Below are positions 1-64,000 of a stretch of 64,000 nt of DNA, in pieces. The position numbers were made by a program, and so were the translations under genes. Numbering within the stretch: position 1 is the first letter of the stretch; each line of letters opens with the position of its first letter. The stretch lies in the IMG/VR virus record IMGVR_UViG_3300043446_003193, positions 124,001 through 188,000 of that record; one strand, 5' to 3'. The notes beneath the pieces are model-generated. The model was not told the origin of the DNA. It was given only the letters and a program-made list of their open reading frames with translations, and made no database searches.

Positions 1-1878
1 TCCAATATATAAATCATCCCAAAGATGTGTAGGGTCTCCTAAACTATATGCACTATATGTTACATTAGTTGCAGGTATTACATTTTGATTTAATGAATTT
101 AAGTAAGATGCAGTTAATGAATTTACTGCGTTTGAAGCAGTTACATATGCTATTGGTGTCCAACTTGCAGTATAAGGTGAACCTGCTGAAACTTGTAAAA
201 CATATCCTGCATAAGATGAACTAATAGAAGGTAAGTCACCACCTATTGTACCAATTGCCCAACCTGCTGCCGCTTCAGGGAATGTAATTAGAGATGAAGT
301 GTTATCCGTTAATACAATTGTTTGAGGAATTATTTTCTCGTAATTACTGTCAAATGTTTGGATATTAACAAATCTATCTCCAAAATTATGTTCAAATCTC
401 CATTCTAAAGAAGATGTAAAACTTTGTTTAACTGTTCTACCATTCACTTCAATTATACCACCAATACCTGCTACCGCGTATCCAGCAACTGGTGTACCAA
501 ATTCTAAAACTAAAGTATTCACATCAGTTGCAGTAATGGTTTGTGGAAGAACTATTTGTCCGGAATTATTATAAACCGTTACATTTGGATATTGTACATT
601 TAAATTATGCGTGAATGTCCAAGTTGCTGCAGAGGTAGTTTGTGTATGTATTTTTCCACCTCCAGTTAATCCGGTCAATAGAGAACCATCACCTTTGAAT
701 GAACCAGTAAATGAACCAGTGAACGGGTCTGTTAAGGTTACAAATTGTGCAGATCCAGATATTAATGTAGGTTTTTCAGTTAATTCAGTAAATGTAATTG
801 GTGTACCTACTTGTCTATATCTTAAATCTAAAGATGCTGTTGTTTGTTCTGAACCACTAATAATTCCGCCTGGTTTATTTGCAATATTGTCCCAAGTTGT
901 TTGAGTTATTGAACCGCTTAAAACATATCTATTATCGTATGAAGCGGTCAATTGTGCAGATGAACTTACTAAACCATTTGATGCAGATATTGGGCCCGTT
1001 ACTTGTAAAGTACCATTAACTATTATTTTATTTCCACCCGTTTGAGTAATAATAGAATCGGAAATGTGGTCATCTCCACTTGCTACCGGAAGATATCCAG
1101 TTGTTAAACCAATTTCATTTCCCAAAGAACCCGTATTTTTAGGTCCTGCTATTAATATTGCCGAACTATATGCTGCTCCAGATGGATTTTCGTATATCCA
1201 ATGATTATTTACCGAATCCCACCAAAGAGAACCGGTTCCAGATGTACTTCCAGAATCTTGTACACTTATACCACCAAAACGAACTGCAGGTGTTGCTGTA
1301 TTTAATAAAACCGTATTTGTTCCAATACTTACTGCCGAACCCGTAATATTTTGAATTGATGATGTACCTTGAACAATTAAATTTTCAGTTACATATAAAG
1401 AACCACTCATTATTTGTGTTCCTTTAAATGTATTTGAACCAGTTGTTGCAAATGAAGATTCAATTACATCTAATCTTGTATCAATTGATGCGGATAAAAC
1501 ATTTGTACTTGCTGCACTTGCACTAAATGATGTTGCAACGGAGGAACTAAAGTCTCCAGTAACAGTTGAAACCGAAGCAGATAATGCTGAAATATTTGCA
1601 TTACTTGCACTTATTGATGTTGCAACGGAAGAAGAAAATGATTGTGTAAATGAATTAATAGCAGATAACGAAGTATCAACCGATGCCGATTTTGCTTCCA
1701 AAGAATTTAATCTCAATGCCTGTGAACCACTATCTGTTGATAATTCATTAAGCCTTTGATTAATTGAAGCGGAAGCAGCTAAAAACGAAGACGATACTGC
1801 TGTATATCTAGGTATTTCTGCTGTTTGTCCGGCTTGCTGTATTAAGGAACCGGTTATAATAGGACTATCTAAAATCAT
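1..1878 (-). CDS. Fibre/virion structural protein, truncated at the left window edge (not in ORF track)
   Basis: ATG at 1878 (MILDSPIITGSLIQQAGQ...). Segments I translated stay in this frame towards position 1. Shares ATTGSNTF, NLIVQG..NIG.N...RFGG..DSGS, QTTWDNIANKP and TWTFTHNL modules with the neighbouring fibre genes. Confidence 0.85.
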   Translation of the reverse strand, partial: MILDSPIITGSLIQQAGQTAEIPRYTAVSSSFLAASASINQRLNELSTDSGSQALRLNSLEAKSASVDTSLSAINSFTQSFSSSVATSISASNANISALSASVSTVTGDFSSSVATSFSASAASTNVLSASIDTRLDVIESSFATTGSNTFKGTQIMSGSLYVTENLIVQGTSSIQNITGSAVSIGTNTVLLNTATPAVRFGGISVQDSGSTSGTGSLWWDSVNNHWIYENPSGAAYSSAILIAGPKNTGSLGNEIGLTTGYLPVASGDDHISDSIITQTGGNKIIVNGTLQVTGPISASNGLVSSSAQLTASYDNRYVLSGSITQTTWDNIANKPGGIISGSEQTTASLDLRYRQVGTPITFTELTEKPTLISGSAQFVTLTDPFTGSFTGSFKGDGSLLTGLTGGGKIHTQTTSAATWTFTHNLNVQYPNVTVYNNSGQIVLPQTITATDVNTLVLEFGTPVAGYAVAGIGGIIEVNGRTVKQSFTSSLEWRFEHNFGDRFVNIQTFDSNYEKIIPQTIVLTDNTSSLITFPEAAAGWAIGTIGGDLPSISSSYAGYVLQVSAGSPYTASWTPIAYVTASNAVNSLTASYLNSLNQNVIPATNVTYSAYSLGDPTHLWDDLYIG

Positions 1879-1896
1879 TTCTCCGTTTTATTTAAG

Positions 1897-1905
1897 TATA
1901 AATAT
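1897..1905 (-). promoter_or_regulatory. Putative late promoter motif ATATTTATA
   Basis: Intergenic, 18 nt upstream of ATG 1878. Confidence 0.65.
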
Positions 1906-1912
1906 CTTTATG

Positions 1913-2236
1913 TTATGGTTTTGGGTATTTTGCTTTTACTTCTAAACATTTTTGTATATAAGCATCAATTTGTTCTTGATCTCCTTTTACAATCCCATCT
2001 AAATAATCCGTAATTGGTGGATATTCCAATTTTCTCCTTCTTTGATAATTCAATGCATTATATTCGGAAATCAATTCTGCTCTTTTTTCTTCAATATCGG
2101 ATGGTAATGTTATAATATTGCCATCCATATCTACAAGTTCTCCATTTATATTAGCACCCTTAATACCATATTTTTCATTTAATACTGAAATATCATCAAT
2201 ATAATCTATATCTATTATTTTATTTTTATTTATCAT
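1913..2236 (-). CDS. Putative tail-fibre assembly chaperone
   Basis: 107 aa directly after a fibre gene. C-terminal YQRRRKLEYPP...VKAKYPKP resembles small phage fibre-associated chaperones. Confidence 0.55.
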   Translation of the reverse strand: MINKNKIIDIDYIDDISVLNEKYGIKGANINGELVDMDGNIITLPSDIEEKRAELISEYNALNYQRRRKLEYPPITDYLDGIVKGDQEQIDAYIQKCLEVKAKYPKP

Positions 2237-2250
2237 AATTATTTATTTTT

Positions 2251-5200
2251 TTATATCCAATATCCCATTATCCATAATCCAATATAATGTGTACCTCCGG
2301 AATAACCAGTAGCTAAATTTGCATAAACACTTCCATTACTATTTACATTTATTATACCACTATCCATAAGACCGTAATATTGAACACCATTTGTTGTATT
2401 TGCGTTGGATGCATCACCATCATGCCATAATACAAATGATCCATAATCTGATCTAGTAAAAGTGCTTGCTGAATATGGGTATGGTCCTCCTGGTCCTGAC
2501 CAAGGATATGGAGTTGTATCAGTTGATGTACCAAATAAAGATACCGCATGATCACCTTGTCCTGCACCACCACTATATCCAGTAATATGATACCAACCCA
2601 ATACTTGAAGTGCTTTTACACCAGATGGTAAACCTAATCCGGTTGTTGAAAATGATGTTTGAACATTACCAGTTACCGATGCACACCATCCAATTGATGT
2701 TGTTAATACACAATATGTGTGTGCTTTGTAGTTTGCGGTACTAATAATTGGAACCGATGGACAAACAGCATTTGGATGTATTGATAATTTTGCCGTGTTA
2801 TTTGTATAGAATACGTGTCTAGAATTTGTTGCATCTCCACTAGAATGATATTGTATATCATAAATTGGTCCAGAAGTAAATCCATGTATAGTTGCTCCAG
2901 AATTAAATAAGTAAAGTTTTAATGAACCATCAGTATATCCACTTGAATAATCATTATTAAATCTTAATGCTGATGGTGTTGCTGTATTTACTTGTGCTGC
3001 ATTGTTTCCCGTATCAATTAAAATATTTCTTTTATCTTTAATTCTAAATCTTTCATCAAAAGTAGAACCATTCCACATTGTGAATATCATATCGGAACAG
3101 TTTGATCCTGCAGACCCACCTATATTACAAACTTTAATTTGTGCGTTACCAAGACCTGCACCGGCTGTACTGTTATCTACTCCAAAATCAATTCCGGTTG
3201 AAGTTCCTGCTGTATTACTACAATTTGTTAAAGTTATAGATGCCGCATATCCTCCAGCAGATACTCCATTTATATGTAACGTGCTTTCCGGAGATGCAGT
3301 TCCTAATCCCATTGCTCCTGAACCTTGACAGAAAAATATTACATTATTTCCTAATTCATTTATATAAAGTGGTTTTGAACCATGTGACTGTATCCAAGAA
3401 TAACTACAACAAGATACACCCATTCTCAAAGTTGCTCCAGTTGGTGAACCTAATCTTAACATACCCGTATTAGAGTCTCCAGTATTACCACATATATCTA
3501 ATAAAAACGATGGAGTACACGTTCCAATTCCAATTTTACCATCACCCTTTATAAACATTAAAGGTTTTGATACACCGCAGTTTGGCGTGGTACTTGTTCC
3601 AAAATAGATACCATTGTTAGGATCACTGCCGGAATAATCATATACTGCTATATGCAATGCTTCACCAAATGTTCCCGCAGTTTGACAAGTATATTCTTTA
3701 TATCCTATAAATCCATTTAATCCATTATCAGTAAATGCTATACCTTGCATTGCTCCATATGCCGAACTGCAGGTTCTCATTTCTATAAGTTGGTGATTAT
3801 CACTATCTATTAAAAGTAATGTATTTGCGTTTGGTGCACCTGCTCCATTTGGACAACTTGCATAAATGTGAACTTTTGCTAATGCAGAATTTGTTCCTAT
3901 ACCAATTTTTCCACCATCTCTTTGTAAATATAAATCTCTAACAACTCCAGCAGGTGTATATGATTGGATTACTGCTCCACATGCAGTTTGTCCACCAATT
4001 CTTAATTCTCCCGTTGAACTTCCAATTCTTGTATGCCAAACATCATAATCACAATAAACGTGTAAAATTGAAGTTGGGCAAGCGGTATTAATACCCACAT
4101 TACCATTTGGTAACCAAGATGTCCTTACAGTTCCACCAACATTATCAAAAACATATAAATTATCTGTACTATCATTATTTAATTGTAACCACCATTTAAT
4201 ATTTCCTGCGGTTGAAAATTGAATATTTGCTTCCGTATTTACATTACATGCTCTATCAATACGAATACCACCAACTCCATCTCCGGTTGTAGAATTATAT
4301 ACTGTAAATTGTAAACAAGGTGTTGATGTTCCTATACCAATTTTACCACCAATTATATTATTACCACCAAAACATGCATTACCAGTAGAACAAACTGTTC
4401 CAGAAGATAATATAGATGGTGAACATACTGCGGTAGAACCATATAATGTAGTTCCACTTAAAGTTCCTCCTACAAATGCACCGGCACATGATGTACCAAA
4501 ACAACCTATTGGTGAACATGCAATTGTAGATGCATAATTAGTTGTTCCACTCATTGTACCACCAATAAATGATGTAGCACATGCTGTACCAAAACATCCT
4601 ATTGGTGAACAAGATATAGTTGATGAATATGTTGTTGTACCTGTTATAGTACCAGTTCCTATTAAATTATTTTTAACACAAGTTGTTGTACCATCATCTA
4701 CAATGCAAGAATCTACAATATGAAAACCACTTTGTACTTTCGGAATGATATTTGTACTTAAACGAGTTTCATTGCCCAAATTATTATAAGTTTCTGGACC
4801 AGTGATCATTATTGATGATGTTAGTGCCGCTCCACTTACAATTTGGTGAACAAATATCCATTCATTATCAACAGAATCAAATAATAACGAACCAGAAACT
4901 TGCGGTGATGAACCACTATCAATTGCTGCCAATCCTGAAAATCTACTTGAAGGGTTTACAGAGTTTACTGTTATTAAATTAGTACCAATATTAAGAGTAC
5001 TTTGAGAAATATATTGTATTGATGATGAACCTTGTACTACTAAATTTTGACTAATATATAACGAACCTGTAATTGTTTGGTCGGCTTTATAAATATTTGA
5101 ACCAGTTGTTGCTAAACTTCCTGTCTTATTTTCTAATGAGTTTAATCTTGAAATATTAGATGCTGATACAGTTTCTAATGAATTAATTCTTGAAATATTA

Positions 5201-5643
5201 GATGCCGAAATTGTTTCCAATGAACCTATTCTACTTAAATTTGAAGCAGATATTGTTTCAATAGAATTTAATCTTGCCGAAGTAGAAGATGTAAATGTAT
5301 TGATATTAGTTATAGAAATATCAACACTTGAACTTTTACTCTCTAAACTATTTAATCTTCCAATATTAGAACCAGAAACTGTCTGTAAAGTAGTTAATTG
5401 AGATGAAACGGAAGAACTAAATGGATTAAATGAAGAAGTAAATACAAAAGCAGAAGCGGAATATCCATTTAATGTATTTGAATTGTCCGCAGTACCAGTT
5501 ATAGTAGTACTTCCTAAATTAATACTATTGATTTGTGAAAAGTTTGCAGTTGATCCTGAAAATGAAATAGTTCCGTCTGCAGATGCTGATATCTGTGCTA
5601 CTATATTTCCACAACTGTCTTTAAATCTATATTGTCCTGCCAT
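2251..5643 (-). CDS. Tail fibre / receptor-binding protein with Cys-rich distal region
   Basis: 1130 aa; coiled-coil repeats, ATTGSN module and repeated G(K/N)(I/V)GIGTxxP fibre repeats. Confidence 0.75.
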   Translation of the reverse strand: MAGQYRFKDSCGNIVAQISASADGTISFSGSTANFSQINSINLGSTTITGTADNSNTLNGYSASAFVFTSSFNPFSSSVSSQLTTLQTVSGSNIGRLNSLESKSSSVDISITNINTFTSSTSARLNSIETISASNLSRIGSLETISASNISRINSLETVSASNISRLNSLENKTGSLATTGSNIYKADQTITGSLYISQNLVVQGSSSIQYISQSTLNIGTNLITVNSVNPSSRFSGLAAIDSGSSPQVSGSLLFDSVDNEWIFVHQIVSGAALTSSIMITGPETYNNLGNETRLSTNIIPKVQSGFHIVDSCIVDDGTTTCVKNNLIGTGTITGTTTYSSTISCSPIGCFGTACATSFIGGTMSGTTNYASTIACSPIGCFGTSCAGAFVGGTLSGTTLYGSTAVCSPSILSSGTVCSTGNACFGGNNIIGGKIGIGTSTPCLQFTVYNSTTGDGVGGIRIDRACNVNTEANIQFSTAGNIKWWLQLNNDSTDNLYVFDNVGGTVRTSWLPNGNVGINTACPTSILHVYCDYDVWHTRIGSSTGELRIGGQTACGAVIQSYTPAGVVRDLYLQRDGGKIGIGTNSALAKVHIYASCPNGAGAPNANTLLLIDSDNHQLIEMRTCSSAYGAMQGIAFTDNGLNGFIGYKEYTCQTAGTFGEALHIAVYDYSGSDPNNGIYFGTSTTPNCGVSKPLMFIKGDGKIGIGTCTPSFLLDICGNTGDSNTGMLRLGSPTGATLRMGVSCCSYSWIQSHGSKPLYINELGNNVIFFCQGSGAMGLGTASPESTLHINGVSAGGYAASITLTNCSNTAGTSTGIDFGVDNSTAGAGLGNAQIKVCNIGGSAGSNCSDMIFTMWNGSTFDERFRIKDKRNILIDTGNNAAQVNTATPSALRFNNDYSSGYTDGSLKLYLFNSGATIHGFTSGPIYDIQYHSSGDATNSRHVFYTNNTAKLSIHPNAVCPSVPIISTANYKAHTYCVLTTSIGWCASVTGNVQTSFSTTGLGLPSGVKALQVLGWYHITGYSGGAGQGDHAVSLFGTSTDTTPYPWSGPGGPYPYSASTFTRSDYGSFVLWHDGDASNANTTNGVQYYGLMDSGIINVNSNGSVYANLATGYSGGTHYIGLWIMGYWI
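4420..4650 (-). repeat. Coding 93-nt (31-aa) Cys-containing tandem repeat
   Basis: GTT.Y.ST..CSPIGCFGT.CA..F.GGT.S repeated about 2.4 times. Confidence 0.8.
5125..5290 (-). repeat. Coding 42-nt (14-aa) tandem repeats
   Basis: RLNSIETISASNLS / RIGSLETISASNIS / RINSLETVSASNIS; related copies near 7765-7910. Confidence 0.8.
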
Positions 5644-5653
5644 TTATTTTTTA

Positions 5654-8191
5654 TTAATAATTATTACCTGATATTGTTATTTTTCCTGTTAAGCTTTCAA
5701 TTGAGAAAATTCTAACTTCTCCCCATACAAAAGATGATGAACCTAAACTTGAAGAGAAATCTACTTTTACTACACTTCTACATGTACCATCAATTGCAAC
5801 GGTCATTGGTGCATGTGTATTAATAGCACATCCAGAACCACCGGTTATTAGGTTACTATCTGTAATAGATGCTGTTCCTCCAACAAATCTATTAACACCA
5901 TATGTTCTTAAAGAAGTCTGTGTATAAGAATCACTTACACCTTGTAATCTTGAACCATATTCAATCGTAAAAATTAATTCTTGGAAACTATCATTATTAT
6001 CTATTGTAACTAAACAAACAGTTCTTGCAGTACCACTTCCAGTAGTTTTTTCAATATAAAATGGAATTTTATACCATTGTCCACCGGTATGGTAATCATA
6101 TCCTTTTCTTGATAATGAACCACCCGAACATATGGTACAAGCAAAACAAGATATACCGGTACTATCAATACGAAGTCTTTGGCCTCCATCTGCTACAGCT
6201 CCAGTTCCGTATAAAACATCTCCAGCTGTTCCTGCATTTGCTCTTGTATAAAATGTTATACCTTCATTATAATACTGCCTAATAAAACTACCATAATATC
6301 CATTATTCATTTGAACAATAGTATTAGCAATAGCTTGGGATGAGATAGCATTATGTCCTAATACTCCCATTTGTCCACTTGGTGTTGCACTTAAAGAATT
6401 ATAAGAATTAACACAATAAACAGAAGAAAATATTGATGTACTAGCAAATAATACAGGTGTACAAACTTGACAACTAAAACAAGCAATTCCTGTTGCTGCA
6501 AACGTCAATCTAGCTGTATAACAAGTACCTATGGATAGAGGAAACGCGCATCTGGTAGATATAAAGTAATCGTCATTGAATACTTGTATGTCGTTAGCAG
6601 CAAAGTGAGTATATCTATTTGAATCACTTTGACCCACTCCAATACCTGTAGCAGTTCCTCCGGTTATAACTTTTAATATTCCTCCTGCTGTATTTACACC
6701 TGCTCCTGAAGTCATGATATTCATTGCTGGTGCACAAACTTGACAACTAAAACAAGCTATACCTGTACTAGTAATACGCAATCTTTCAGTATTTAAGTAA
6801 GTAGCAAAGCGAATTGTATCTGCTACACCGAATCCTATATTTAATTCATTTCCAGAACCTAAAAAAAGTGTTTGCCCCAATGTTCCATCTGCTCTTTTTA
6901 TGAAAATTCCTTTATCATTTGATAAATTTATATTATCTGTTGTAGTAAGTGTTAATGCGCAAACATTACCAGAAAAACAAGCATTACCGCTTCTATCCAA
7001 TAACATTCTACTTGTATAAGTACCAACTCCATTATTTGTATAAACTTGTAAACCTGTTCCAGTTGATAATGCTACTTTCTCATTATATCCCGTTGTTATT
7101 TCAAAGTTGGTACCAGGACTATTAAGACTAAGTCCTGCTGTTGCTTGATTTGAATATCCCCATTGAATATACCCATCTGTAAACCCACCAACTGAACACC
7201 CTTTTATTGTTATTGATGAAGAATTGGTTGTGTTACCCACAACAAGATTACATGCTATTGTTGTAGTATTACCAAAACATGCGGTTCCTGTACCTATTAA
7301 ATTATTTTTAATACAGGTCGTAGTACCATTATCAAATATACAAGAATCAGTAATATGAAAACTATTAGTTGATTTTGGAATTATATTCGTAGTTAAACGA
7401 GTTTCATTACCGATATTATCGTAAGTTTCGGGACCAGTAATTACGGTAGAAGATGTTACAGCAGTGTTTCCTGCATGAACAAAAATCCATTCATTATCAG
7501 TTGAGTCAAAATAAAGTGAGCCACTCTTTCCCGCTGCACTACCACTATCAATTGCAGATATACCAGCAAATCTAACCGATGGGTTTGCGGTATTTAATAG
7601 GACGGTATTTGTACCAATATTAACCGCCGATGCAGTAATGTTTTGAAGTGAAGAACTACCTTGAACTACTAAGTTATTTTGAATATAAACAGTTCCACTT
7701 ATAATTTGGTCTCCGTTAAATGTGTTACTACCAGTAGTTGCTAATGAACCAGTTTTATTTTCTAACGAATTTAATCTTACAATATTTGAAGCGGATATTG
7801 TTTCAATAGAATTTAATCTTGCAGAAGTAGATGAAGTAAATGCTTCTACACTTCCTAATCTTGCGATGTTTGAAGCAGATATTATTTCAATAGAATTTAA
7901 TCTTGCCGTAGCAGATGCTGTAAATGTATTAGTTCCGGAATTACTTGCAGTAAATGAGTTTAATGAAGAAAGAATACCAACTACTTGTTCACTTCCACTA
8001 ACTAAAGTTGGAACACCTGTTAAGTTTGTATAACTAATAGAACCGGTTAATGCTGATGCAGATACTGCTCCTACAATACTTTGGTCACCTACGAATGTAT
8101 TTGAACCAGTTGTTGTATAAGCTCCTAAATCATTAAATGCATCACCATTTACCGAGAAACTACCAGTAATTATCGCTGAATCTATTCTCAT
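5654..8191 (-). CDS. Tail fibre protein, paralogue of 2251..5643
   Basis: 845 aa; N-terminal third closely similar to the 1130-aa gene (SGSL.FDS.DNEWIFVH, ITGPETY.N.GNETRL); ERLRI/GIACFS repeats distally. Confidence 0.75.
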   Translation of the reverse strand: MRIDSAIITGSFSVNGDAFNDLGAYTTTGSNTFVGDQSIVGAVSASALTGSISYTNLTGVPTLVSGSEQVVGILSSLNSFTASNSGTNTFTASATARLNSIEIISASNIARLGSVEAFTSSTSARLNSIETISASNIVRLNSLENKTGSLATTGSNTFNGDQIISGTVYIQNNLVVQGSSSLQNITASAVNIGTNTVLLNTANPSVRFAGISAIDSGSAAGKSGSLYFDSTDNEWIFVHAGNTAVTSSTVITGPETYDNIGNETRLTTNIIPKSTNSFHITDSCIFDNGTTTCIKNNLIGTGTACFGNTTTIACNLVVGNTTNSSSITIKGCSVGGFTDGYIQWGYSNQATAGLSLNSPGTNFEITTGYNEKVALSTGTGLQVYTNNGVGTYTSRMLLDRSGNACFSGNVCALTLTTTDNINLSNDKGIFIKRADGTLGQTLFLGSGNELNIGFGVADTIRFATYLNTERLRITSTGIACFSCQVCAPAMNIMTSGAGVNTAGGILKVITGGTATGIGVGQSDSNRYTHFAANDIQVFNDDYFISTRCAFPLSIGTCYTARLTFAATGIACFSCQVCTPVLFASTSIFSSVYCVNSYNSLSATPSGQMGVLGHNAISSQAIANTIVQMNNGYYGSFIRQYYNEGITFYTRANAGTAGDVLYGTGAVADGGQRLRIDSTGISCFACTICSGGSLSRKGYDYHTGGQWYKIPFYIEKTTGSGTARTVCLVTIDNNDSFQELIFTIEYGSRLQGVSDSYTQTSLRTYGVNRFVGGTASITDSNLITGGSGCAINTHAPMTVAIDGTCRSVVKVDFSSSLGSSSFVWGEVRIFSIESLTGKITISGNNY

Positions 8192-11100
8192 TATTCTCCT
8201 ATTTTATTTTCTAATTGTTTAACTTTTTCCGATAACTCTTTTACTGCTCCGATTAACAATGCTGTTACTTTTGAGTAATCTAACAACATTACTTCTTCGT
8301 ATGTATTTCCTATAAGTATTTCTTTTTTCGTCACTAATTCTGGTTGAACATCATAAACTTCTTGAGCAATCATACCAATTTGTTTAACTCCTTCGTTGTT
8401 GTATTCACTAACCCAATCAAAAGTATATCCGTTTAATTTCTCTACTTTGTCCAATGAGTTTTCAATCAATTCTAAATTAGTTTTTAAACGATTGTCAGAG
8501 GTTGTATTAAAGTTTTGTGCGTCTACATCACCCGTAACAACCAATGAACCAGTGAACTGATATGAACCATTGCCCATATCGTTTAGTCCGTTCATTATTC
8601 TCGGACCACCTTTAGAAAGTATTGCGTTTCCGGCTGTTGGTATTGCAAAAGTTAAAGTTAAAGTATTTGCATTTGTTGCCTTTATCGTTTGTGGTAATAA
8701 CATTTCATCGTTACTATCATAAACATTTACATTAACATATTTGTAGTTAAGTCCGTGATTAATTGTCCAAGTTGATGCCGATGTTGCTTGGTTATAAAGG
8801 TATCTGTCTCCGGATAAGTTTGAAATACCACCAACGGAAACATGCGCAAATCCATTTTCAGCAGATGCAAATGTAATTGTAAGTTGTGTATTAGAAACTT
8901 TTGTTATTTCATCTGGTATAATTACTTTACCACTATTATCATAAATTGTAACTGATGGATAATCGTATTCTAAATTATGCGTAACTGTCCAAGTTGTACT
9001 CGCTACACTTTGTGAATGTAAATATCTACCACTATCAATGTTTGCATTATCCAATATAAGAGAACCAGTAATAATTAATGAACCAGTGATTATTTCAGTA
9101 CCAATAAATGTATTTGAACCAGTAGTTGCTAATCTACTATATCCAATTAATGTATTTATATCGTTTCCAACTTCTACATATCTTAAATCATATGAAGATG
9201 TTAATTGAGCCGCTCCACTTACAATTCCTGCTGGTTTGTTTTCAATATTATCCCAAGTCGTTTGAGTGATACTTCCACTTAAAACATATCTTGTATCATA
9301 AGAAGATGTAAGTTGAGAAGAACCACTAATCAACCCTAAACCATTTGAAAATATTGAACCAGATACTCCGAAAGAACCAGTAACTTCTGCACCATTACCA
9401 CTCACTCTGAATTTTCTTAACCAAGTACTTCCGTTAAATTCTGCAACATTGAATCCACTACCACCACTATTTCTAGTATCAAATACAAATTCAGAAGAAC
9501 CTCTTTGTCCTAAATCTGCATAATTGTTACCAAACATTTGATAATATGGTCCGTATATTGTAGAACCATCAAACATTCCAAACAATGTATTTGCAGTTGC
9601 ACTATGTACTTGCAATTGTCCATTATTTCCTAAAACAATACTTCCAAGAGTTTTTATAGAACCGGTAAACGAATGTATATCATCTGAACTATCACCAAAT
9701 TTAGTAGAACCACTTTCATATGCTACAAAAGATGTAGTTAATTGTGTTTGTATTTGTTGAGCTACTAAAGTTCCAGTAATTGTTAAACTTCCAGTTATTA
9801 CCTGATTACCATTAAAATTATTTGAACCAGTTGTTGCTAAACTTCCACTTTTAAGTTCTAATGATGTTAATCTATTATTTACAGAAGAACTTAATGCAGT
9901 TATGTTTCCGTTACTTGCACTAAATGATGTTGCAACTGAAGAACTAAAATCTCCGGTAACAGTTGATACACTTGCACTTAAAGAAGTTATATTAGCATTA
10001 CTTGCTGAAATAGAAGTTGCAAAAGCTCCACTTACTGAACTCAATGATGCTGAAACTGAAGAACTTAATGAACTTAATTCCGCATCAGTTGCGTATGTTG
10101 TATTCAAAGAAGAACTCCAACTTTCTAAATTTACAAATCTACTATTTAATGAAGAACTAAATGTAGAATATCCAGTTGTTGAACTTAATGTAATTTGAGA
10201 TGAACCAGAAACTAATGTAGGTTTATTTGCTACATTTGTATAAGAAATATATGATGATGTTTGTGAATTTGATACCGATGCACTCACTATTGATTGCCAA
10301 CTTGCAAATCCATTTTGAACTTGTAAAGTATATCCTTCGTAAGAAGCACTAATAGATGGTAATCCACCACCAACACTTGCTACGACTGTACCAGTTGTTG
10401 GATAAGGGAAATAAATTATAGCTTGTCCACTATCTACGGTTTCAATTCTTGATGGTATAACTACATCTCCAGAAGGTCCAAATACTTCAAATACAGGATA
10501 TTTGTCACCAATATTATGTTGGAATATCCAAGTATCAGATGCAACTGATACTGTTAATCTTTTTGAAGTTCCTTGAGTTGATACACCACCAATACTTGCT
10601 ACTGCATAACCGGTTCTAGCTGATGAAAACACAATATCCATTGAAGAAGTAGTCATTGACTCAATTCTTAATGGCTGTATTACTTGATTATTATTATCAT
10701 AAACGGTTACTACCGGATGTAAATTTTCTAAATTATGTGTGAATGACCAAGTTTGAGCTGCTACCGATTGTGATAATTGTGCAAAGTTTACAGTGTCTAA
10801 TGCAATACCGGTACCAGTATTTGTACCAGTAAATGATATTGATGCTGTTCCACTTGCTAATACAACATTTATTCCAGAACCAGTTTCAAAATTTAATTGT
10901 CCTGCAGTTCCTAAAAATGTACTACCCGTTGCAATTGTTACACCACTTCCCGCTGCAATAATACCATATAATCCACTACCATCTCCACTAAATGCACCAG
11001 TAATTGCAGATGCAGAAACTGTTGATGCTGATATATGTGTAATGTTTAATGAATCAATTGATGTTCCACTTAATTGAGATGAACCAGATATTAATCCATC

Positions 11101-11520: not shown

Positions 11521-11529
11521 CTTCTTCTA

Positions 11530-11877
11530 TTAGTTATTTGCGTTTTCAAGAACTGATAATACTACTTCTAATGATCCAGATTGTGTAGTTCTCATAATCA
11601 ATGCGTCATTTCTTTCTAAAATTACTTTACCAGGAAAAGGATTTAATGCTTCTCCAACTGGAATATGTGCGTTGTATATCAAAGATGATAATGCTAAAGA
11701 ACCACTCTTTTGAACTTGAACCGTTACAGTTTGTTCACTACCGGTAACATTCGTTACTGCAGCAGATAAAAGGATTGTAGCTAAGTCTTGGTCTTCCTGA
11801 TATATTGTGTTACTTCCACTTGCTAAAGTTTTAGTAATTACTCTGAATCTATTTAAAGGTAATTGACTAGTTGCCAT
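11530..11877 (-). CDS. Small virion structural protein
   Basis: 115 aa beta-rich (LNRFR...GKVILE...LSVLE); resembles small proteins that follow beta-helix structural genes in T4-like phages. Confidence 0.55.
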   Translation of the reverse strand: MATSQLPLNRFRVITKTLASGSNTIYQEDQDLATILLSAAVTNVTGSEQTVTVQVQKSGSLALSSLIYNAHIPVGEALNPFPGKVILERNDALIMRTTQSGSLEVVLSVLENANN

Positions 11878-11887
11878 AATTTATTTT

Positions 11888-15562: not shown

Positions 15563-15614
15563 ATCTATGGTTCTTATTACAGTATATACTAAAAAATGAC
15601 TTATATAAGTCTCT

Positions 15615-15652: not shown

Positions 15653-15679
15653 CCAATTTAATTTTTTATGTTCGTTCTA

Positions 15680-55400: not shown

Positions 55401-55491
55401 TAAAGTATCTACTATTTGGATCAGTATCTTCTAAAAATATATTATATCTCTCTAAATTTTCTGGAAATAGAGTCTTTTTAAGAATGGCCAT
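49396..55491 (-). CDS. Giant tail/central fibre protein with C-terminal peptidase S74 chaperone
   Basis: 2031 aa; G.IGG(F/W).I repeats; ends SSDIRLKKNI...PVAYSWN...GFIAQDV...YNELIPIMV. Confidence 0.8.
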   Translation of the reverse strand: MAILKKTLFPENLERYNIFLEDTDPNSRYFRITELPGTFSGGKNSFLIQGSPELVADTLIKIEIKDALGNVIYHEPGEGIPEYYEGTSKVVAVYVYPDTAFGPCTITILGELSEYEDANGLLTPIPSNWENQYNVRWQKVVNVNPIIANTTKIRFYRRPTVDITETILPIYNRTVNRVTISGSVDGVSVQPTSGSNFRTFKGDTIYELKISGSNFSSSMEGETITITGLNQSYSTIIKDVVNSKKALATIPYYETSSNATNAVQYVTDFSSASFTLPYNESVTLTNSAISSSYAKIKIANLETFSGDVNRLKIFGKRKSDIGNYSLLEDIQLESNELFQTDAYSGSVNVRIGQFSSQKIIDDFWKYKKHEENTYYTATQNDSVLASSVKLQDDNTLNTTQHPQRVFYNHNDIDFLSNTEYQLDFSLLLQSSSFGYGKLNVFGVGPAFVVEDSDLGYGKLLGEFNVSESFRRFDKQQINFKPDTDGQGQIFFNIHQGEWYLSNISLRASQETNFSPNEVTLNVNVPTKVNNDTYDFRFEFYDINNNYVPVTLEKEITFTGGTDTIVQKSLTVTPDNTLFSFSGSGETIGVSSINFDISKIGLTGSVTFYSSAFDANGDYINPSVYASEPFYPGLLTNVTETSATLLVSNFTGSISSSKISRVQYTASCEDVRDLVNIYRVDQGAVGADGIDGQNFIAIANKNQFVYDPDDNNVPAQLNDFIDIKLTNNIVSGSIYITSGSYLPKLALISTEYIGKSTESVYRVFSGDDQHDVAMLGTNVASWSYATPTQLTHKGTYYFNKGGYSSSVQLEGVLKGDKSKNLNAVSNANQFFYKMTDLSLSPSGQTITIDVKRNNLGSTTNEITVTSGSSKPALTVGSNNNTTGVQSYSINGSDYSYSSGATTYTFTAYDLNNAVYSDTITITPVIAESQIAVTVSNENTTFPAYSGGTVFGGFLASSGSISVKVGSEDISYASTIGNNKFSASISSSSNVTAVLTNNNYSITALSADSGSINLKVTYRDGRGSDSTFVKLVTYSKAKAGTPNVLVAVSPSAQSINANSKTSGSATPTALTITALESGTSRFTSIGTPTYTNGLAGTVSSNVITITSTASSITGSTAQVTIPVNYTDSEGTSGTKNVVATVSKALAAPPAVVVSIEKDGQTITKSTAGSYGTPSSFKLYVNEGGSAYAYDATSPYVIPSFRISSVTNGTNAGVDGDGYTTITPSTPSSTSGLIVSITGSYVDSEGTSTTFYKTHNVNVSSDGTDGNTGATGPGIVLRGEYAAGTTYYYTTVAGSSRRDAVYQSSGGVTKYYATLQQTTGNAPTDGASNSYWEYLGTQDFFVAAKIAIFDESYVKNTLNIGTNASGSAANITLAGGTTKPFVSIGQGVQSYGTNGIWLGISGSSFVPKVSFVSGSNYFKYDASATNIVDIGGAISATTLTAQTGSIGGFEIQAGKLIGGTATNGVILDGGQSRVIAGNSSGNSQAVMSIAGFHAGNTAFNSAPFRVDTAGALVASNANISGKITATDGTIGGWVIGQNSISKDKITLNAGGTGADNYIQITGESTYAGNRVLIHPGELLTTVPGAGSAITATTAQTYFSIGTSTPQNLYLYNVNGSTVATLSATSTNMYTSLSATSTYSINASVKYRIDLEWNNAPTMEYTYVASTGTFSTVDQAALNIAYHIKYNLSQDPTNLNYYSSITRGWIGGSAEAAVTAFISYFNTKKGTSYTTLSQMDGQYIDFYTSFDSVTGTATVTSTLSYGGTSIGSISRTVSPSTTSTQEEFADTSFQFITLGKTTNPLQISTTKSNGLVANYRKTRWHIDYYDSFTLFGFGTIPAGYAIWAESIGVDSYSPSSTNYYAKGLSLTATSLTKQVEISERGLQALFNSSQDSTGNFLKVEDIATPTAANANIKSAGYFAHYGELHVKGDIAGFSTSLSSDIRLKKNIVDIDETEIEDMDRLHPVAYSWNSDSENKKHYGFIAQDVEKIYPNLTDGRIMGEYLTIKYNELIPIMVKQIQNLKKEVNTLKQVLSNGK

Positions 55492-60567: not shown

Positions 60568-61521
60568 TTATGTGTCAAATCGTACAATAAAATTAACTGT
60601 CAAATCATGTTCTGACTTTATTGGTTGTGGTAATTTTGCAACCGCCAATAAATCACAGTTATCATCATACAATCCAATTGTTGTAATAAATGGTGCTAAA
60701 AAAGAGCCAGTTGAATCTACCGAACTACTAACATCCCAATGATCAAACCCACCTGATATAGCGGAATTTACAGATGAACCAAATCTATAATCTAATATAT
60801 CACCATTTTCTAATACTGATTTTTTACGAATGTATTTTGCGGGTTGGGTTGTATATAATTTTTGTATTTTATTATCTGCTGTGTTTAATTCATATTCTCC
60901 ACCAACACTAACTATTGCAGTTGGATTTGTTGAAACATTGAATTCATCTTGCTCACAAATCAAAAGATATTCGTGCTCATAAATTGTTTCGGTAGATTTA
61001 TATTGTATATCCCATGTACCACCTAATTTTGAATTAGAACCACTTGTAATTACAACCAATCCTTGATTGTAAAATACATTTCCAATTCTATGATTACTTC
61101 CGCTCAATACTAAATTACTATACTTATCATCTACATAGTAAGTTCCACCATCATTTAATAAAACCGAACCCTTTTTTATTCCATCACCAATACAATTTTG
61201 TGGTATTGATATTACTTTTGCTGAACCACTTAAAAATCTTTCTGGATTTGTTTCATCATATACATTTGTTTTACTACCTAATCTATAAAATGGGTCATTT
61301 TCTTTTCCATTATAAAATTGGGCTCTAAGCTGTCCAAATACAGAATATTTGTTATATATTGACCCACTTAATAATCCGGTAGTAATTGTATTTGCATCAT
61401 TAGATGTATAGTTACCATCTACTGCTTCCAATAGTGTAACTCCTGCTGATGTTTTATCCCATTCTTTATAAGCTTTGAATGGTCTAATACTAATATCTGA
61501 TTTAGGTATTCTTTTTAACAT
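60568..61521 (-). CDS. Baseplate/tail structural protein
   Basis: Ends PFITTIGLYDD...LLAVAKL..PI; paralogous to 61595..62818. Confidence 0.6.
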   Translation of the reverse strand: MLKRIPKSDISIRPFKAYKEWDKTSAGVTLLEAVDGNYTSNDANTITTGLLSGSIYNKYSVFGQLRAQFYNGKENDPFYRLGSKTNVYDETNPERFLSGSAKVISIPQNCIGDGIKKGSVLLNDGGTYYVDDKYSNLVLSGSNHRIGNVFYNQGLVVITSGSNSKLGGTWDIQYKSTETIYEHEYLLICEQDEFNVSTNPTAIVSVGGEYELNTADNKIQKLYTTQPAKYIRKKSVLENGDILDYRFGSSVNSAISGGFDHWDVSSSVDSTGSFLAPFITTIGLYDDNCDLLAVAKLPQPIKSEHDLTVNFIVRFDT

Positions 61522-61527
61522 ATCGTA

Positions 61528-61536
61528 TATAAATAT
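61528..61536 (-). promoter_or_regulatory. Putative late promoter motif ATATTTATA
   Basis: After a terminator, 6 nt before ATG 61521. Confidence 0.65.
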
Positions 61537-61545
61537 CTCAAAACT

Positions 61546-61570
61546 AAAAACCCACCAAATTAAGGTGGGT
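61546..61570 (-). terminator. Intrinsic terminator
   Basis: Minus strand ACCCACC-TTAATTT-GGTGGGTTTTT. Confidence 0.8.
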
Positions 61571-61594
61571 CATAGTTTTTATTTTATTCTCCGA

Positions 61595-62818
61595 TTAGAA
61601 GTCTAATTTAACTTTGATTGCAATCTCTTTATCAAAAGATTTTTCAATTGGTTTTGAAGTTTTAGCTACTGCTAATAATTCATTTGCGTCATCATACAAT
61701 CCAACAGTTGTAATGAAAACCTTAGGGTCTTTTTCAAATGTTGATTGAACGAATTGTCCAACTGAACCAGTTACGAATGTTGGGTTATTTGAGAAGTTAA
61801 ATTCTCTATTGTTTGCTCTTACGAAATAATGAGAGGTTGAAACATTCTCAGTTCTACGAGCTTGGAAATCTGCACCTAAATTAATTGCTTTAAATAAATT
61901 GATAGAACCAGTTAAGTTGTGATAAACACCACTTTGAGAACTAGTTGCACCCGCTAAATTACCACCAACACTTGCACTTATTGCAGATGGGTTTAATAAG
62001 ATAACACCCATATCAGGATAGAATAAACCATATCCTTTACCATTTGATGCTGTGTATGTACTAATAGATGATGTTAAAGCAGAACCAATGTTTAATGAAC
62101 CACTAACAATATTATAAACTCTACCTGCAGTTGTTACATTCTCATCTGTACCACCACTATCATCAATTAATGTAATTAAACCAACTGAACCAGAAAGTTT
62201 CAATGAGAAGTTTCCTGGGTCCAATCTTTCTTTATATCTTGCTCTATTTACATTAATTGCGTAGAAATTAGTTAAATCGTGTCCAGCTGCAGTTGAACCA
62301 CTATATACACTAAAGTACGGGTCAGCAGAATCTAATAATACATTTCTAAATTGGTTATAAACCGCTTTAGTAGGCATTGTAGATGAATCATCTTGTGTTA
62401 ATGTTGGTGCACCATATCCATCAACATCACCATACGCAATTGAGAATTGAACCTCTGCTGTATCTGATGATGGAGTTGCGTTATAAACATCAATATAGTA
62501 CTTACCACTTGCATCTGCAACTTGTGTTGAAGATGTATAGGCAACTGTCAATGAACCGGTATCACCACTCCATATACCAGAAGTTACTATTTCTGTTTTG
62601 TTAGTTACTTTATCAATTGCACCAAATTTTTTATAAATACCATTTGAAATAGTATTTGTATCTGCACTAATTTGTTCTCCTTGTCCTAAAAATGTGTTTA
62701 CGATTCTAACTAATTCGTTAGTATCTACCGGAGTACCTGTTGTATTTGCAGCAGTCGCTAAGTACTGTGATAAGTTACTTGCTAAAAGGGCTCCTCTATT
62801 GTCTCTTATTAATGCCAT
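61595..62818 (-). CDS. Baseplate/tail structural protein
   Basis: EFNFSNNPT...VFITTVGLYDDANELLAVAK.SKPI.K C-terminal domain. Confidence 0.6.
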   Translation of the reverse strand: MALIRDNRGALLASNLSQYLATAANTTGTPVDTNELVRIVNTFLGQGEQISADTNTISNGIYKKFGAIDKVTNKTEIVTSGIWSGDTGSLTVAYTSSTQVADASGKYYIDVYNATPSSDTAEVQFSIAYGDVDGYGAPTLTQDDSSTMPTKAVYNQFRNVLLDSADPYFSVYSGSTAAGHDLTNFYAINVNRARYKERLDPGNFSLKLSGSVGLITLIDDSGGTDENVTTAGRVYNIVSGSLNIGSALTSSISTYTASNGKGYGLFYPDMGVILLNPSAISASVGGNLAGATSSQSGVYHNLTGSINLFKAINLGADFQARRTENVSTSHYFVRANNREFNFSNNPTFVTGSVGQFVQSTFEKDPKVFITTVGLYDDANELLAVAKTSKPIEKSFDKEIAIKVKLDF

Positions 62819-62826
62819 AGTTTATA

Positions 62827-63450
62827 TTATTGAACGTAAGTTACTGTTACTGGAATAGTTTGTGAACCACCCGTTTCATTACCATAAACTGTGATTGTAG
62901 TTTTGATAGTAGATGTTAATGAACGGTTAGGAATAAATTTGAAAGATAAACCTTTAGCGATAGCTGCTGTTGCAGATACATCATCACCAATGAATACTGG
63001 TACTGAACCTACGTCAGATGTTACACCTTCACCTACAATATCACCTGCGTTTTTATTTGCCAATAGAATTGTATATCCTAAACTTCTATTTCCCGCTGGA
63101 GATGTAGTTGGTGATAAAGCAACTTCACCACTTCTTTGATTTACTGAAATATTAGGAACACCAAATTCAACAACAGGAATTCTAGTTGTGCTTTTTGGTA
63201 ATGTTACTAATTTGTATTTCATTACTTGAGTTTCATCTGGATTAGCTTCCAACACTGGCATATTTTTAATTGCCGCGTCGTAATATGCAGAACCCAATGG
63301 ATGAGCTGGCTCATATAAACTGTAATCAATTTCATCATCTGCTAAAGCAAATTGAGTGATGTTAATTCCTCCACCTGCTGCTAATTTCTCTCTACCTTTT
63401 TTGGTAAGAATAGCATCTACTGTTAATTCGGTGTTACTTAAATATCCCAT
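62827..63450 (-). CDS. Baseplate wedge-like structural protein
   Basis: DAILTKKGRE.LA...ITQFALADDEIDY N-terminus typical of baseplate/collar-like proteins. Confidence 0.55.
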   Translation of the reverse strand: MGYLSNTELTVDAILTKKGREKLAAGGGINITQFALADDEIDYSLYEPAHPLGSAYYDAAIKNMPVLEANPDETQVMKYKLVTLPKSTTRIPVVEFGVPNISVNQRSGEVALSPTTSPAGNRSLGYTILLANKNAGDIVGEGVTSDVGSVPVFIGDDVSATAAIAKGLSFKFIPNRSLTSTIKTTITVYGNETGGSQTIPVTVTYVQ

Positions 63451-63471
63451 AGTATTGTATTAATCGTTTGA

Positions 63472-63480
63472 TATAAATAT
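63472..63480 (-). promoter_or_regulatory. Putative late promoter motif ATATTTATA
   Basis: Upstream of 63450. Confidence 0.65.
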
Positions 63481-63498
63481 AATAATTTTCAAATTCCG

Positions 63499-64000
63499 TT
63501 ATTCTACTTCCAAAATTGGTTCACTTGCATCTCTACCTGCCTTATTAACTCTCAATGTATTAGGATTAGTAGTAAATACTTCTACTGGAGGAGTACCGTC
63601 TAATGTAGTCGCTGCAGTATTTTTGGAACCTCTAAAGAAAGAATTTTCTAATCCTCTTGTTAAATCGGAAGTATTTCTAAAGTGAGTAGGTAAGTATCCA
63701 TTTAATGGAGTTACACTAACAATACTTCCAGTTCCTGCATTTATAGTTTTTGAACCAGAAAATGGTTGTACATTTAAATATGTTTCATAATATACAGAAG
63801 ATGTTAGTTCAACTCCACCTCTTTCATCTCCCTTACCATTAACAACCACTTTATATTTAACAATATCTCTTCTTTTTTGTTCTTTAATTAAATCAACTTT
63901 GATTCTTTCTTTTACCGTTCTATTATTTTCATCAATATATGTTCTAATAGCATATCCGTTTTGTGCATATATTCCGAATCCAATTGTTTCATAATCAGTT
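63499..64000 (-). CDS. Structural protein, 5'-truncated at the right window edge
   Basis: The frame of the tracked 116-aa ORF stays open to 63999 (TDYETIGFGIYAQNGY...). Confidence 0.75.
   Translation of the reverse strand, partial: TDYETIGFGIYAQNGYAIRTYIDENNRTVKERIKVDLIKEQKRRDIVKYKVVVNGKGDERGGVELTSSVYYETYLNVQPFSGSKTINAGTGSIVSVTPLNGYLPTHFRNTSDLTRGLENSFFRGSKNTAATTLDGTPPVEVFTTNPNTLRVNKAGRDASEPILEVE

Follow-up and report, generated by a model that had tools for sequence, protein, structure and literature searches.

Why do the outer virion proteins of a 209-kb aquatic phage (IMG/VR record IMGVR_UViG_3300043446_003193) carry so many copies of one short Ser/Thr-Gly-Ser motif, and are these copies marks for phage-encoded sugar-adding enzymes? 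The question arose from a sequence-only reading of a 64,000-nucleotide stretch of this genome (here, the window; positions 124,001 to 188,000 of the record), which claimed that [ST]-[GAS]-S tripeptides recur across unrelated exterior proteins, that they are scarce in internal ones, and that a GT7 glycosyltransferase in the tail operon points to sequon-directed O-glycosylation of the particle. The observation proved to be real, and stronger than first stated. The interpretation is only partly supported, since the motif does not track the GT7 and no modification has been demonstrated.

All the peptides on which the claim rested are present: the neck N-terminus WSGSISGSFISGSS, the capsid sites ATASW, LSASL, QSGSI and GTGSA at residues 184, 197, 229 and 254, and sites in the 78-, 115-, 317-, 407- and 2031-aa proteins and in every fibre. 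Comparison with shuffled proteins, proposed beforehand as a test, showed a large excess. Against global and 20-aa local shuffles, respectively, ten fibre-like ORFs of the window carry 241 sites versus 93 and 109 (z 16 and 14) and six other exterior proteins carry 34 versus 7.8 and 10.2 (z 9.7 and 8.1), while the 27 remaining ORFs carry 6 versus 8.9 and 10.7, i.e., no enrichment. The features concerned are listed in the table.

Table. Features of the window and of the rest of the genome (positions within the window unless marked G000, the whole 209-kb genome)
Feature	Position	Strand	Size	Observations
Block of fibre-like genes	1..21649	-	partial 1047-aa ORF at the left edge, then 1130, 845, 1109, 1224, 637 and 830 aa	Small 115-, 112- and 364-aa genes lie between them; also a 107-aa ORF (1913-2236) with no motif site. 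Belongs to a 15-member paralogue family (paralogue graph) that continues upstream of the window; holds most motif copies. The 364-aa protein has an ALK_LTK glycine-rich domain.
Neck (gp13-like) protein	24162..25358	-	398 aa	Three SGS copies in the first 19 residues; 7 sites against 1.3-2.6 expected. Orthologues in immuto, Mel-JY01 and RM378; motif positions mostly not conserved.
Major capsid protein (Gp23 family)	25458..27083	-	541 aa	Pfam Gp23 1.2e-77. Four motif sites in the variable central region; all sites fall in alignment columns 127-307.
78-aa protein	31566..31802	-	78 aa	3 sites against 0.3-0.4 expected, p 0.004-0.007.
GT7-LamG glycosyltransferase	42752..44140	-	462 aa	beta4GalT-type catalytic core (residues 2-155) fused to a ConA-like/Laminin_G_3 domain (171-354); no N-terminal membrane stem. 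Pfam Glyco_transf_7N 6e-21, Glyco_transf_7C 1e-20, Laminin_G_3 4e-7. Best solved match beta4GalT7 3lw6, E 2.6e-36; query residue 2 aligns to chain residue 50.
Protein of unknown function	44143..44607	-	154 aa	Between the 1598-aa gene and the GT7, with 2-nt spacing on each side. No Pfam or PHROG hit; a 148-aa counterpart keeps the same position in the loci L003 and L004.
Thr-rich protein	44610..49406	-	1598 aa	Same operon. Not motif-enriched: 8 sites against 13-14 expected. Weak HINT-like C-terminus: sub-threshold Intein_splicing and PT-HINT matches; an Atlas search gave only a HINT-domain lead.
Fibre or spike protein	49396..55491	-	2031 aa	First gene of the operon that ends with the GT7. C-terminal Peptidase_S74 chaperone domain (7.8e-16); 31 sites against 16-20 expected. 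Same gene order in L003 and L004.
Baseplate-region proteins p317 and p407	60568..62818	-	317 and 407 aa	BLAST-linked paralogues; 6 sites against 1.3 and 11 against 2.6-3.7 expected. The p407 family is very large and carries conserved TSS, LSGS, VSGS and xGS sites.
Baseplate-region protein, C-terminal end	63499..64000	-	1677 aa (whole)	Runs off the right edge of the window. Whole ORF at G000 187499-192532: 26 sites against 6.7-9.6 expected.
Ser-rich protein	G000 25698-27182		494 aa	38 sites against 40 expected from local composition.
GT2	G000 57830-58462		210 aa	Best solved relative GmaR.

In an unbiased ranking over the whole genome, SGS (164 observed versus 48.7 expected, z 16.5) and TGS (115 versus 42.1, z 11.2) were the two most overrepresented of all 8000 tripeptides. 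SAS, SSS and TAS were also raised, whereas GSS, SSG, GSG, GGS, AGS, SGT and GAS were not. The SSS/TSS members of the motif as first proposed are weak, and its core is [ST]-[G>A]-S. The capsid protein is a weak case: its four sites versus 1.8 expected are not significant alone (p about 0.1), and the count reaches 13 versus 6.9 (15 of 1000 shuffles) only when four orthologues are pooled. Likewise, the reported scarcity in terminase, portal and similar proteins is simply what their low Ser content predicts, at under one site expected each.

Could the excess be an artifact of composition, low complexity, repeats or a DNA-level signal? Many fibre copies lie in shared modules, and the 494-aa Ser-rich protein is explained by local composition. 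However, after masking of BLAST-detectable paralogy and internal repeats the excess remains (346 versus 238, z 7.9), and it is seen in about ten families unrelated by BLAST. There is no shared DNA word: the motif is spelled by 66 distinct 9-mers using both TCN and AGY Ser codons, and this phage and immuto (see below) prefer different codons. Together with the global and local shuffles and the flat permuted tripeptides, these controls refute an artifact. The excess is confined to fibres, sheath, baseplate, neck and, weakly, capsid; a beta-rich TonB-receptor-like protein in the same genome shows 3 sites versus 3.3 expected.

The motif also marks a lineage. [ST]GS runs at 3.0 to 4.5x expected in this phage and its three cultured relatives, Flavobacterium phage immuto, Microcystis phage Mel-JY01 and Rhodothermus phage RM378, against 0.9 to 1.7x for [ST]GT, and at 5.4x against 0.94x across 80 metagenomic relatives. 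In the fibre-rich controls T4, T5, P-SSM2, phiKZ and phi38:1 it is at 0.7 to 1.5x, which rejects a generic property of phage fibres. Within the lineage, sites turn over while density is kept: most sites differ between orthologues of sheath, neck, capsid, p355 and p407, and sheath and capsid sites lie in variable, gapped regions, yet each orthologue stays enriched (sheath across four phages, 32 versus 13.5).

Is the motif, then, merely a structural habit, i.e., a preferred way of building tight turns or strand edges in the beta-rich fibre, baseplate and sheath-decoration domains of these phages, inherited with those domains and unmodified? This is the main rival, possible and only slightly less favored than the reading we prefer. 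A hydrophobic residue precedes the motif at -1 (56%) and follows at +3 (50%), with an alternating pattern thereafter and a Gly at +7 in fibres, and spacing peaks at 6 and 12 residues. The Gly is invariant in close p407 homologues, several sites are conserved across the whole p407 family, and in an AF2 model of p407 (pLDDT 85.8; secondary structure only) most sites lie at strand-loop junctions, in loops, strand ends or turns. On the other hand, the same model places sites in mixed contexts (a hairpin, a strand end, a helix, a helix N-cap and loops), and the flanks carry little information, at most 0.21 bits per position over 1703 distinct instances. Discrimination is fivefold for Ser over Thr at position 3 and for S/T over A/G at position 1; among 150 diverse p407 representatives, [ST]GS is at 6.4x and [AG]GS at only 1.15x. 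In fibre segments homologous to P-SSM2, the phage's SGS and TGS align to SGA and DGG, so that the Gly is kept, which fits a structural habit, while the hydroxyls are specific to this lineage, and homologous and analogous fibres in P-SSM2, T4, phiKZ, phi38:1 and the relative LR756508 do without the motif. A structural beta-turn explanation is not excluded. Other structural searches added little: Foldseek found no fold match in the PDB for the p407 model, sequence searches of two fibres against solved structures found nothing, and PHROGs gave almost nothing for the structural proteins.

Is the GT7 the enzyme that the motif serves? By sequence it is a genuine beta4GalT7-like enzyme, at 74.8 and 73.3 bits for Glyco_transf_7N and Glyco_transf_7C against cutoffs of 27 and 23, and its HDVDMLP and WGMEDDD align with the DVD and WGxEDDD motifs of beta4GalT7. 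The alignment stops at chain residue 200 of 287, the rest of the phage protein matching Laminin_G_3 instead, and the C-terminal third of the catalytic domain appears to be replaced by a ConA-like domain; beta4GalT1 scores almost as well (1e-31). The GT7 is co-operonic with two giant tail proteins in a conserved arrangement, and beta4GalT7, the second enzyme of the proteoglycan linkage region, acts on a sugar attached to Ser in Ser-Gly sites. However, GT7-LamG has no homologue in immuto, Mel-JY01, RM378 or any other of 50,697 phage records, and it is absent from the complete metagenomic relative G002, whose baseplate region is 7.1x enriched. It is patchy in other relatives, sometimes in two to three tandem copies, and absent from most that carry the motif. 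Moreover, GT7 enzymes extend glycans rather than start them, no GT14-type xylosyltransferase (PF02485) was found in the genome, SGxG is at 0.92x and acidic contexts are not enriched, and the S/T-rich 1598-aa neighbor lacks the enrichment. The link between this motif and this GT7 is therefore not supported; as a sole explanation it is already contradicted and very unlikely. A sigma-70 promoter and terminator scan of the GT7 operon was uninformative, with fewer hits than in shuffles.

The phage has far more glycosylation capacity than the sequence-only reading saw. The genome holds six more glycosylation-type genes, the inventory beyond GT7-LamG comprising a GT2+7C (366 aa), a GT2 (229 aa), a methyltransferase, a HAD plus NTP-transferase fusion, the 210-aa GT2, a GT-B (423 aa) and a GT4 (460 aa). 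The 210-aa GT2 is present in all four enriched cultured phages and in both complete metagenomic relatives, and absent from LR756508, a relative with 55% capsid identity and no enrichment (0.82x), although this is the single phylogenetic contrast on which the association rests. Among the 50,697 phage records it occurs only in the enriched phages, apart from four short (3.8- to 6-kb) Listeria phage fragments at 27 to 31% identity. An AF2 model of it was too poor to use (pLDDT 50.6, shallow alignment), but a profile search of the PDB gave as best solved relative GmaR (E 1.3e-6), the cytoplasmic Listeria flagellin O-GlcNAc transferase, which O-glycosylates Ser/Thr residues at three to six surface-exposed sites of a polymerizing structural protein (PMC3551598). 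The match is weak (31 bits), GmaR carries an extra anti-repressor part, and GT-A enzymes with similar sequences act on many kinds of acceptor. The core transferases are kept across phages of Flavobacterium, Microcystis and Rhodothermus, which argues for a phage-intrinsic substrate rather than host glycans. They lie among replication genes, though, and could modify DNA by an undetected route: no thymidylate-synthase-type hydroxymethylase to feed DNA glycosylation was found, but a Tet_JBP search lacked a positive control and so proves nothing.

Overall, [ST]-[G>A]-S, usually with a hydrophobic residue on either side, behaves like a directional short linear motif on exterior virion proteins, selected at the amino acid level and, in our reading, under positive selection. 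We tentatively favor the view that it is the sequon of a phage-encoded, cytoplasmic protein O-glycosylation system that would decorate fibres, sheath, baseplate, neck and capsid before or during assembly. The initiating enzyme would be a lineage-core transferase, the best candidate being the 210-aa GT2, possibly working with the two neighboring GT-B genes (423 and 460 aa), with the HAD plus nucleotidyltransferase fusion supplying the sugar donor. GT7-LamG would be an optional accessory that extends or diversifies the glycan in the subset of phages carrying it. What the analysis establishes is the motif statistics, the restriction of the motif to this lineage and to virion proteins, and the enzyme inventory with its distribution among phages; that any modification occurs, that it is a sugar, which residue accepts it (the strict Ser at position 3 is our guess) and which enzyme does what, including any sugar transfer by the GT7, are inferences. 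The statistical signature would also fit a recognition site for something else, such as phosphorylation, acylation or phosphoglycosylation, a fibre or virion assembly chaperone, or a docking decoration protein, as nothing in the data names the chemistry. We consider this unlikely: no kinase, acyltransferase or chaperone tracking the motif was found in a nonsystematic search, and transferases are the one enzyme class both abundant in the genome and core to the lineage.

Phage-encoded glycosyltransferases have already been proposed to decorate structural proteins made in the cytoplasm in mycobacteriophages (Freeman et al. 2023, as summarized in PMC12619734). There the glycans, shown experimentally, sit on C-terminal extensions of the capsid and tail-tube subunits, whereas the candidate sites here are a tripeptide scattered over about ten protein families, including fibres and sheath. 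The general O-glycosylation of Bacteroidota, the likely host phylum, also uses a three-residue sequon, D-(S/T)-(A/I/L/V/M/T), on many unrelated proteins, but is host encoded and works outside the cytoplasm; its sequon is not enriched here (0.98x; 108 observed versus 110 expected in S/T-rich proteins), nor is NxS/T (0.92x). Serine-rich-repeat adhesin glycosylation (GtfA/GtfB), which acts on Ser-x-Ser-type repeats, and chlorovirus capsid glycosylation, which uses virus-encoded enzymes (PMC9614988 for giant viruses), are likewise cytoplasmic glycosylation of structural surface proteins, with different enzyme families and acceptor contexts. To our knowledge no O-glycosylation sequon of the form [ST]-G-S has been described, which, like the lack of enrichment of known sequons, counts against the sequon reading. 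A literature search returned only unrelated papers.

In its boldest form, which remains doubtful, this reading would mean that an abundant clade of aquatic myoviruses, with members so far known to infect Flavobacterium, Microcystis and Rhodothermus, runs its own general protein O-glycosylation system with a private sequon, [ST]-[G/A]-S. A small GmaR-like GT2 would initiate the glycan and accessory transferases that come and go, including beta4GalT7-like GT7-LamG proteins, would elaborate it, so that the whole outside of the particle would be sugar coated. If the motif proves structural instead, it is still a sharp sequence signature of this lineage. If it is a sequon, this would be the first sequon-directed glycosylation of a whole phage particle, in a group very common in water samples, the p407 and GT2 families each returning thousands of metagenomic homologues. 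It would change how the fibre and receptor-binding proteins of these phages are modeled, could explain why they carry so many glycosyltransferases of unknown role, and would give a simple sequence readout, [ST]GS density, for predicting which virion surfaces are coated.

The 209,443-bp phage contig (G000) is about 32% G+C, and every gene in the window lies on the minus strand. These genes encode a T4-type capsid protein (Pfam Gp23, 1e-77) and a neck protein, the portal, terminase, primase, and an SbcC-like protein, and a long run of fiber genes. By capsid protein, the nearest named phages are Microcystis phage Mel-JY01 (55%), Flavobacterium phage immuto (53%), an uncultured 484-kb phage, LR756508 (55%), and Rhodothermus phage RM378 (39%). 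Three of these are cultured, immuto on Flavobacterium sp. LMO8, Mel-JY01 on Microcystis, and RM378 on Rhodothermus marinus. A TonB-dependent-receptor/SusC-like outer membrane protein of 1,093 aa encoded elsewhere in the genome (CarboxypepD_reg plus OMP beta-barrel, 8.7e-62) looks host derived and points to a Bacteroidota host. It shows no enrichment in the motif (3 sites against 3.3 expected). Coordinates of the features are compiled in the table below.

Features referred to in the text. Window positions are those of bases 124001-188000 of G000; other positions are those of the record named.
Feature	Record	Positions	Strand
GT7-LamG protein, 462 aa	window	42752-44140	minus
Thr-rich protein, 1598 aa	window	44610-49406	minus
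Peptidase_S74 fiber protein, 2031 aa	window	49396-55491	minus
Fourteen fiber-like ORFs filling about 46 kb	window and G000	window 1-21649 and upstream to about G000 99600 (G000 99.6-145.6 kb)	
Gly-rich protein, 364 aa	window	18050-19144	minus
Protein with N-terminal cytidylyltransferase-like domain, 1361 aa	window	38582-42667	minus
TonB-dependent-receptor/SusC-like protein, 1093 aa	G000, outside the window	42686-45967	minus
Additional glycosylation-type genes	G000, outside the window	50-62 kb	
HAD-nucleotidyltransferase fusion, 456 aa	G000, outside the window	56482-57852	minus
Tandem GT7-LamG paralogs	L002 (ENA contig of 222 kb)	2692-5474	
Region without [ST]GS excess	LR756508.1 (484-kb uncultured phage)	60-260 kb	

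The recurrence of the [ST][GAS]S tripeptides described in the sequence-only reading was confirmed, and every peptide quoted there is present. ORFs were called by a simple longest-ATG rule, and expected counts were obtained from per-protein composition or shuffles. Most fibers and the 78-, 112-, 115-, 317-, 398-, and 407-aa proteins carry 2 to 5 times more [ST][GAS]S than expected, against both whole-protein shuffles and shuffles within 20-residue blocks. Summed by class within the window, the 10 fiber-like ORFs had 241 sites (93 expected from global and 109 from local shuffles) and six other exterior proteins had 34 (7.8 and 10.2), while the 1598-aa protein had 8 (13 and 14) and the remaining 27 ORFs had 6 (8.9 and 10.7). 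The 1598-aa Thr-rich protein is the one large S/T-rich late protein without the motif; it has subthreshold HINT/intein-splicing matches at residues 1449 to 1588 and may process itself. Two of the earlier claims need trimming. The capsid protein, in which the motif had been said to cluster, is not significant alone and becomes so only when four orthologs are pooled (13 against 6.9), and the scarcity in the terminase, portal, and the like is what their composition predicts.

In an unbiased ranking of all tripeptides over the whole genome, SGS came first (164 against 48.7, z 16.5) and TGS second (115 against 42.1, z 11.2), with SAS (2.2×), SSS (1.95×), and TAS (1.75×) also raised. Rearrangements of the same residues were flat (GSS, 1.4; SSG, 0.7; GSG, 1.05; GGS, 0.77; AGS, 0.92; SGT, 1.1; GAS, 0.6). 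Fifteen fiber-like ORFs of 534 to 2,031 aa form one BLAST-linked paralog family, of which the 2031-aa protein lies apart from the other 14, an unusually large fiber repertoire for one phage, and shared modules such as RLNSLE..TGSLATTGSN recur between members. We therefore masked every segment that aligns to an earlier protein or to an earlier part of the same protein. The excess remained (346 against 238, z 7.9) and stayed significant in the sheath, the neck, p317/p407 (the 317- and 407-aa proteins), p355, the 1677-aa protein, the 364-aa protein, and the three small proteins. The 364-aa protein has 24% Gly and matches the ALK/LTK glycine-rich domain (3.4e-8). The signal acts on amino acids and not on DNA, since the [ST]GS sites use 66 different 9-mers and both Ser codon families, and immuto uses different codons for the same motif. 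An artifact is, on these grounds, very unlikely, and the least likely of the explanations considered.

The core of the motif is narrow. Position 1 must be S or T, position 2 prefers G, then A, then S, and position 3 is Ser and not Thr, with [ST]GS running at 3.0 to 4.5× while [ST]GT runs at 0.9 to 1.7×. The flanks say little: over 1,703 distinct instances no flanking position exceeds 0.21 bits, and there is only a mild preference for a hydrophobic residue at −1 and +3. In fibers, a longer pattern appears, hydrophobic-[ST]-G-S-hydrophobic-x-hydrophobic-x-G.

To investigate where else the motif occurs, we compared the observed/expected ratio of [ST]GS in S/T-rich proteins across phages. The ratio was 3.49 in this phage, 3.02 in immuto, 4.45 in Mel-JY01, and 4.01 in RM378, as opposed to 0.83 in T4, 0.67 in T5, 1.39 in P-SSM2 (32 kb of S/T-rich protein), 0.73 in phiKZ, and 1.47 in Cellulophaga phage phi38:1. 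SGS and TGS rank among the top six tripeptides in all four cultured phages of the lineage. In 80 IMG/VR loci around p407 homologs (40 to 82% identity), the ratio was 5.4 (1,573 against 292), with [ST]AS at 2.6× and [ST]GT at 0.94×, although these loci repeat the same few protein families and are not independent. The motif is therefore not a general property of fibers but marks one lineage. One relative breaks the pattern: in 200 kb of LR756508 that includes its capsid, p407, and fiber-like genes, [ST]GS is at 0.82×. The structural proteins of LR756508 are much poorer in Ser/Thr, and its p407 ortholog keeps three conserved sites, but its fibers have none in excess.

Between orthologs of the sheath, neck, capsid, p355, and p407, a few sites are fixed (VSGS in all four p407 proteins and TGSL in all three p355 proteins), while most sit at different places, often in gapped, variable regions. 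Each ortholog nevertheless stays enriched, the sheath across four phages showing 32 sites against 13.5. Among 120 close p407 homologs, substitutions tend to keep the motif (TSS/TAS/SAS and SGS/TGS) while the flanks drift. Across 150 diverse representatives [ST]GS is at 6.4×, and the family consensus holds TSS, GSGS, LSGS, VSGS, and xGS. An AF2 model of p407 (pLDDT 85.8), from which secondary structure but not solvent exposure could be read, places its 11 sites in mixed settings, i.e., loop into strand, strand into loop, one hairpin turn, one strand end, one helix interior, one helix N-cap, and plain loops. The model has no fold match in the PDB. Where a fiber of this phage is homologous to a P-SSM2 fiber, its SGS and TGS align to SGA and DGG; the Gly looks structural, and the flanking hydroxyls are the lineage-specific addition. 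The main alternative to a modification site, considered possible and only somewhat less likely than the reading favored below, is that the motif reflects a lineage-specific structural habit at turns and strand edges. The hydrophobic flanks, the conserved p407 sites, and the conserved Gly favor this alternative, whereas the Ser-over-Thr discrimination, the mixed structural contexts, and the negative controls weigh against it.

The 462-aa protein of the window matches Glyco_transf_7N, Glyco_transf_7C, and Laminin_G_3. Its best solved relative is beta4GalT7 (E 2.6e-36), with the DVD and WGxEDDD motifs in place, and beta4GalT1 is close behind. The alignment starts at residue 2 of the phage protein, so there is no membrane stem, and ends where the ConA-like domain begins. 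The gene follows the 2031-aa Peptidase_S74 fiber gene, the 1598-aa gene, and a 154-aa gene with an overlap or 2-nt gaps, and the same order is kept in relatives at 62% identity; its earlier description as lying inside the tail operon is therefore fair. The family has 1,857 metagenomic homologs. In other large contigs it occurs as a tandem pair beside radical-SAM, methyltransferase, and sugar-nucleotide genes. In L002, for example, a different large viral contig, two GT7-LamG paralogs sit in tandem beside a radical-SAM enzyme, a methyltransferase, a mannose-1-phosphate guanylyltransferase-like gene, and LamG-domain proteins, in what looks like a glycan-building island. However, GT7-LamG has no homolog in any of 50,697 phage records. 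It is absent from the complete relative G002, whose baseplate region is 7.1× enriched, and is present, sometimes in two or three tandem copies, in only some other relatives. The motif does not depend on it, and the proposal in the sequence-only reading that the motif serves this GT7 is very unlikely.

Outside the window, the additional glycosylation-type genes comprise a GT2+7C protein (366 aa), a GT2 (229 aa), a methyltransferase, a beta-phosphoglucomutase-like HAD fused to a sugar-1-phosphate nucleotidyltransferase (456 aa), a GT2 of 210 aa, a weak GT-B (423 aa), and a GT4 (460 aa). The 456-aa fusion would make a one-protein route to an NDP-sugar; it has no ortholog in immuto, Mel-JY01, or RM378 by BLAST. 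The 210-aa GT2 and the GT4, in contrast, have orthologs in all three. The 210-aa GT2 is 82 to 88% identical across hundreds of metagenomic clusters. In the phage collection it occurs only in the enriched phages, plus four short (3.8- to 6-kb) records labeled Listeria phage (OR848533.1, OR847070.1, OR848573.1, and OR847307.1) that match at 27 to 31% identity and may be fragments carrying a gmaR-like gene. It is present in both complete metagenomic relatives and absent from LR756508, which does keep the GT4, so that its association with the motif has a single phylogenetic contrast. A profile of the 210-aa GT2 found GmaR as its best solved relative (E 1.3e-6), with weaker matches including chondroitin synthase and the peptide glycosyltransferase SunS. 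GmaR is the Listeria O-GlcNAc transferase that modifies three to six surface-exposed sites of flagellin (PMC3551598). In immuto, the gene next to the GT2 is annotated as a dTDP-4-amino-4,6-dideoxygalactose transaminase. The genome has no thymidylate-synthase-family hydroxymethylase and no GT14. An alternative is that the core transferases modify DNA. A recent paper on jumbo aquatic Bacteroidota phages, which may or may not be the same lineage, reports four core glycosyltransferase orthogroups of unknown role (PMC12619734). Within the window, a 1361-aa protein has only an N-terminal cytidylyltransferase-like domain recognized, leaving about 1,250 residues unexplained. In a syntenic position (upstream of the terminase), immuto has a 907-aa protein annotated as an NadR-type NMN adenylyltransferase and Mel-JY01 a “cytidylyltransferase like protein,” counterparts by position only, without established sequence similarity.

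We tentatively favor the reading that [ST]-[G>A]-S is a sequon for a lineage-core cytoplasmic protein O-glycosylation system, in which GT7-LamG would be an optional extender. The argument rests on the narrow core with uninformative flanks, the restriction to exterior virion proteins, the positional turnover with density kept, the absence of the motif from homologous folds in other phages, and a conserved set of transferases whose distribution across very different hosts suggests a phage-intrinsic substrate. While the motif excess, its distribution, and the enzyme inventory are established by the analysis, that the motif is modified at all, and that the transferases act on it, is inferred from sequence alone. 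A non-sugar modification or an assembly-factor site appears unlikely but would be a further possibility. Overall, the observation holds and is extended here beyond what was first noted, whereas its interpretation is supported only in part: the idea of a virion-surface sequon is viable, but the GT7 is not its key enzyme. If the reading is true, phage virion glycosylation, itself already known, would here take a new form, directed by a short sequon on the virion surface.
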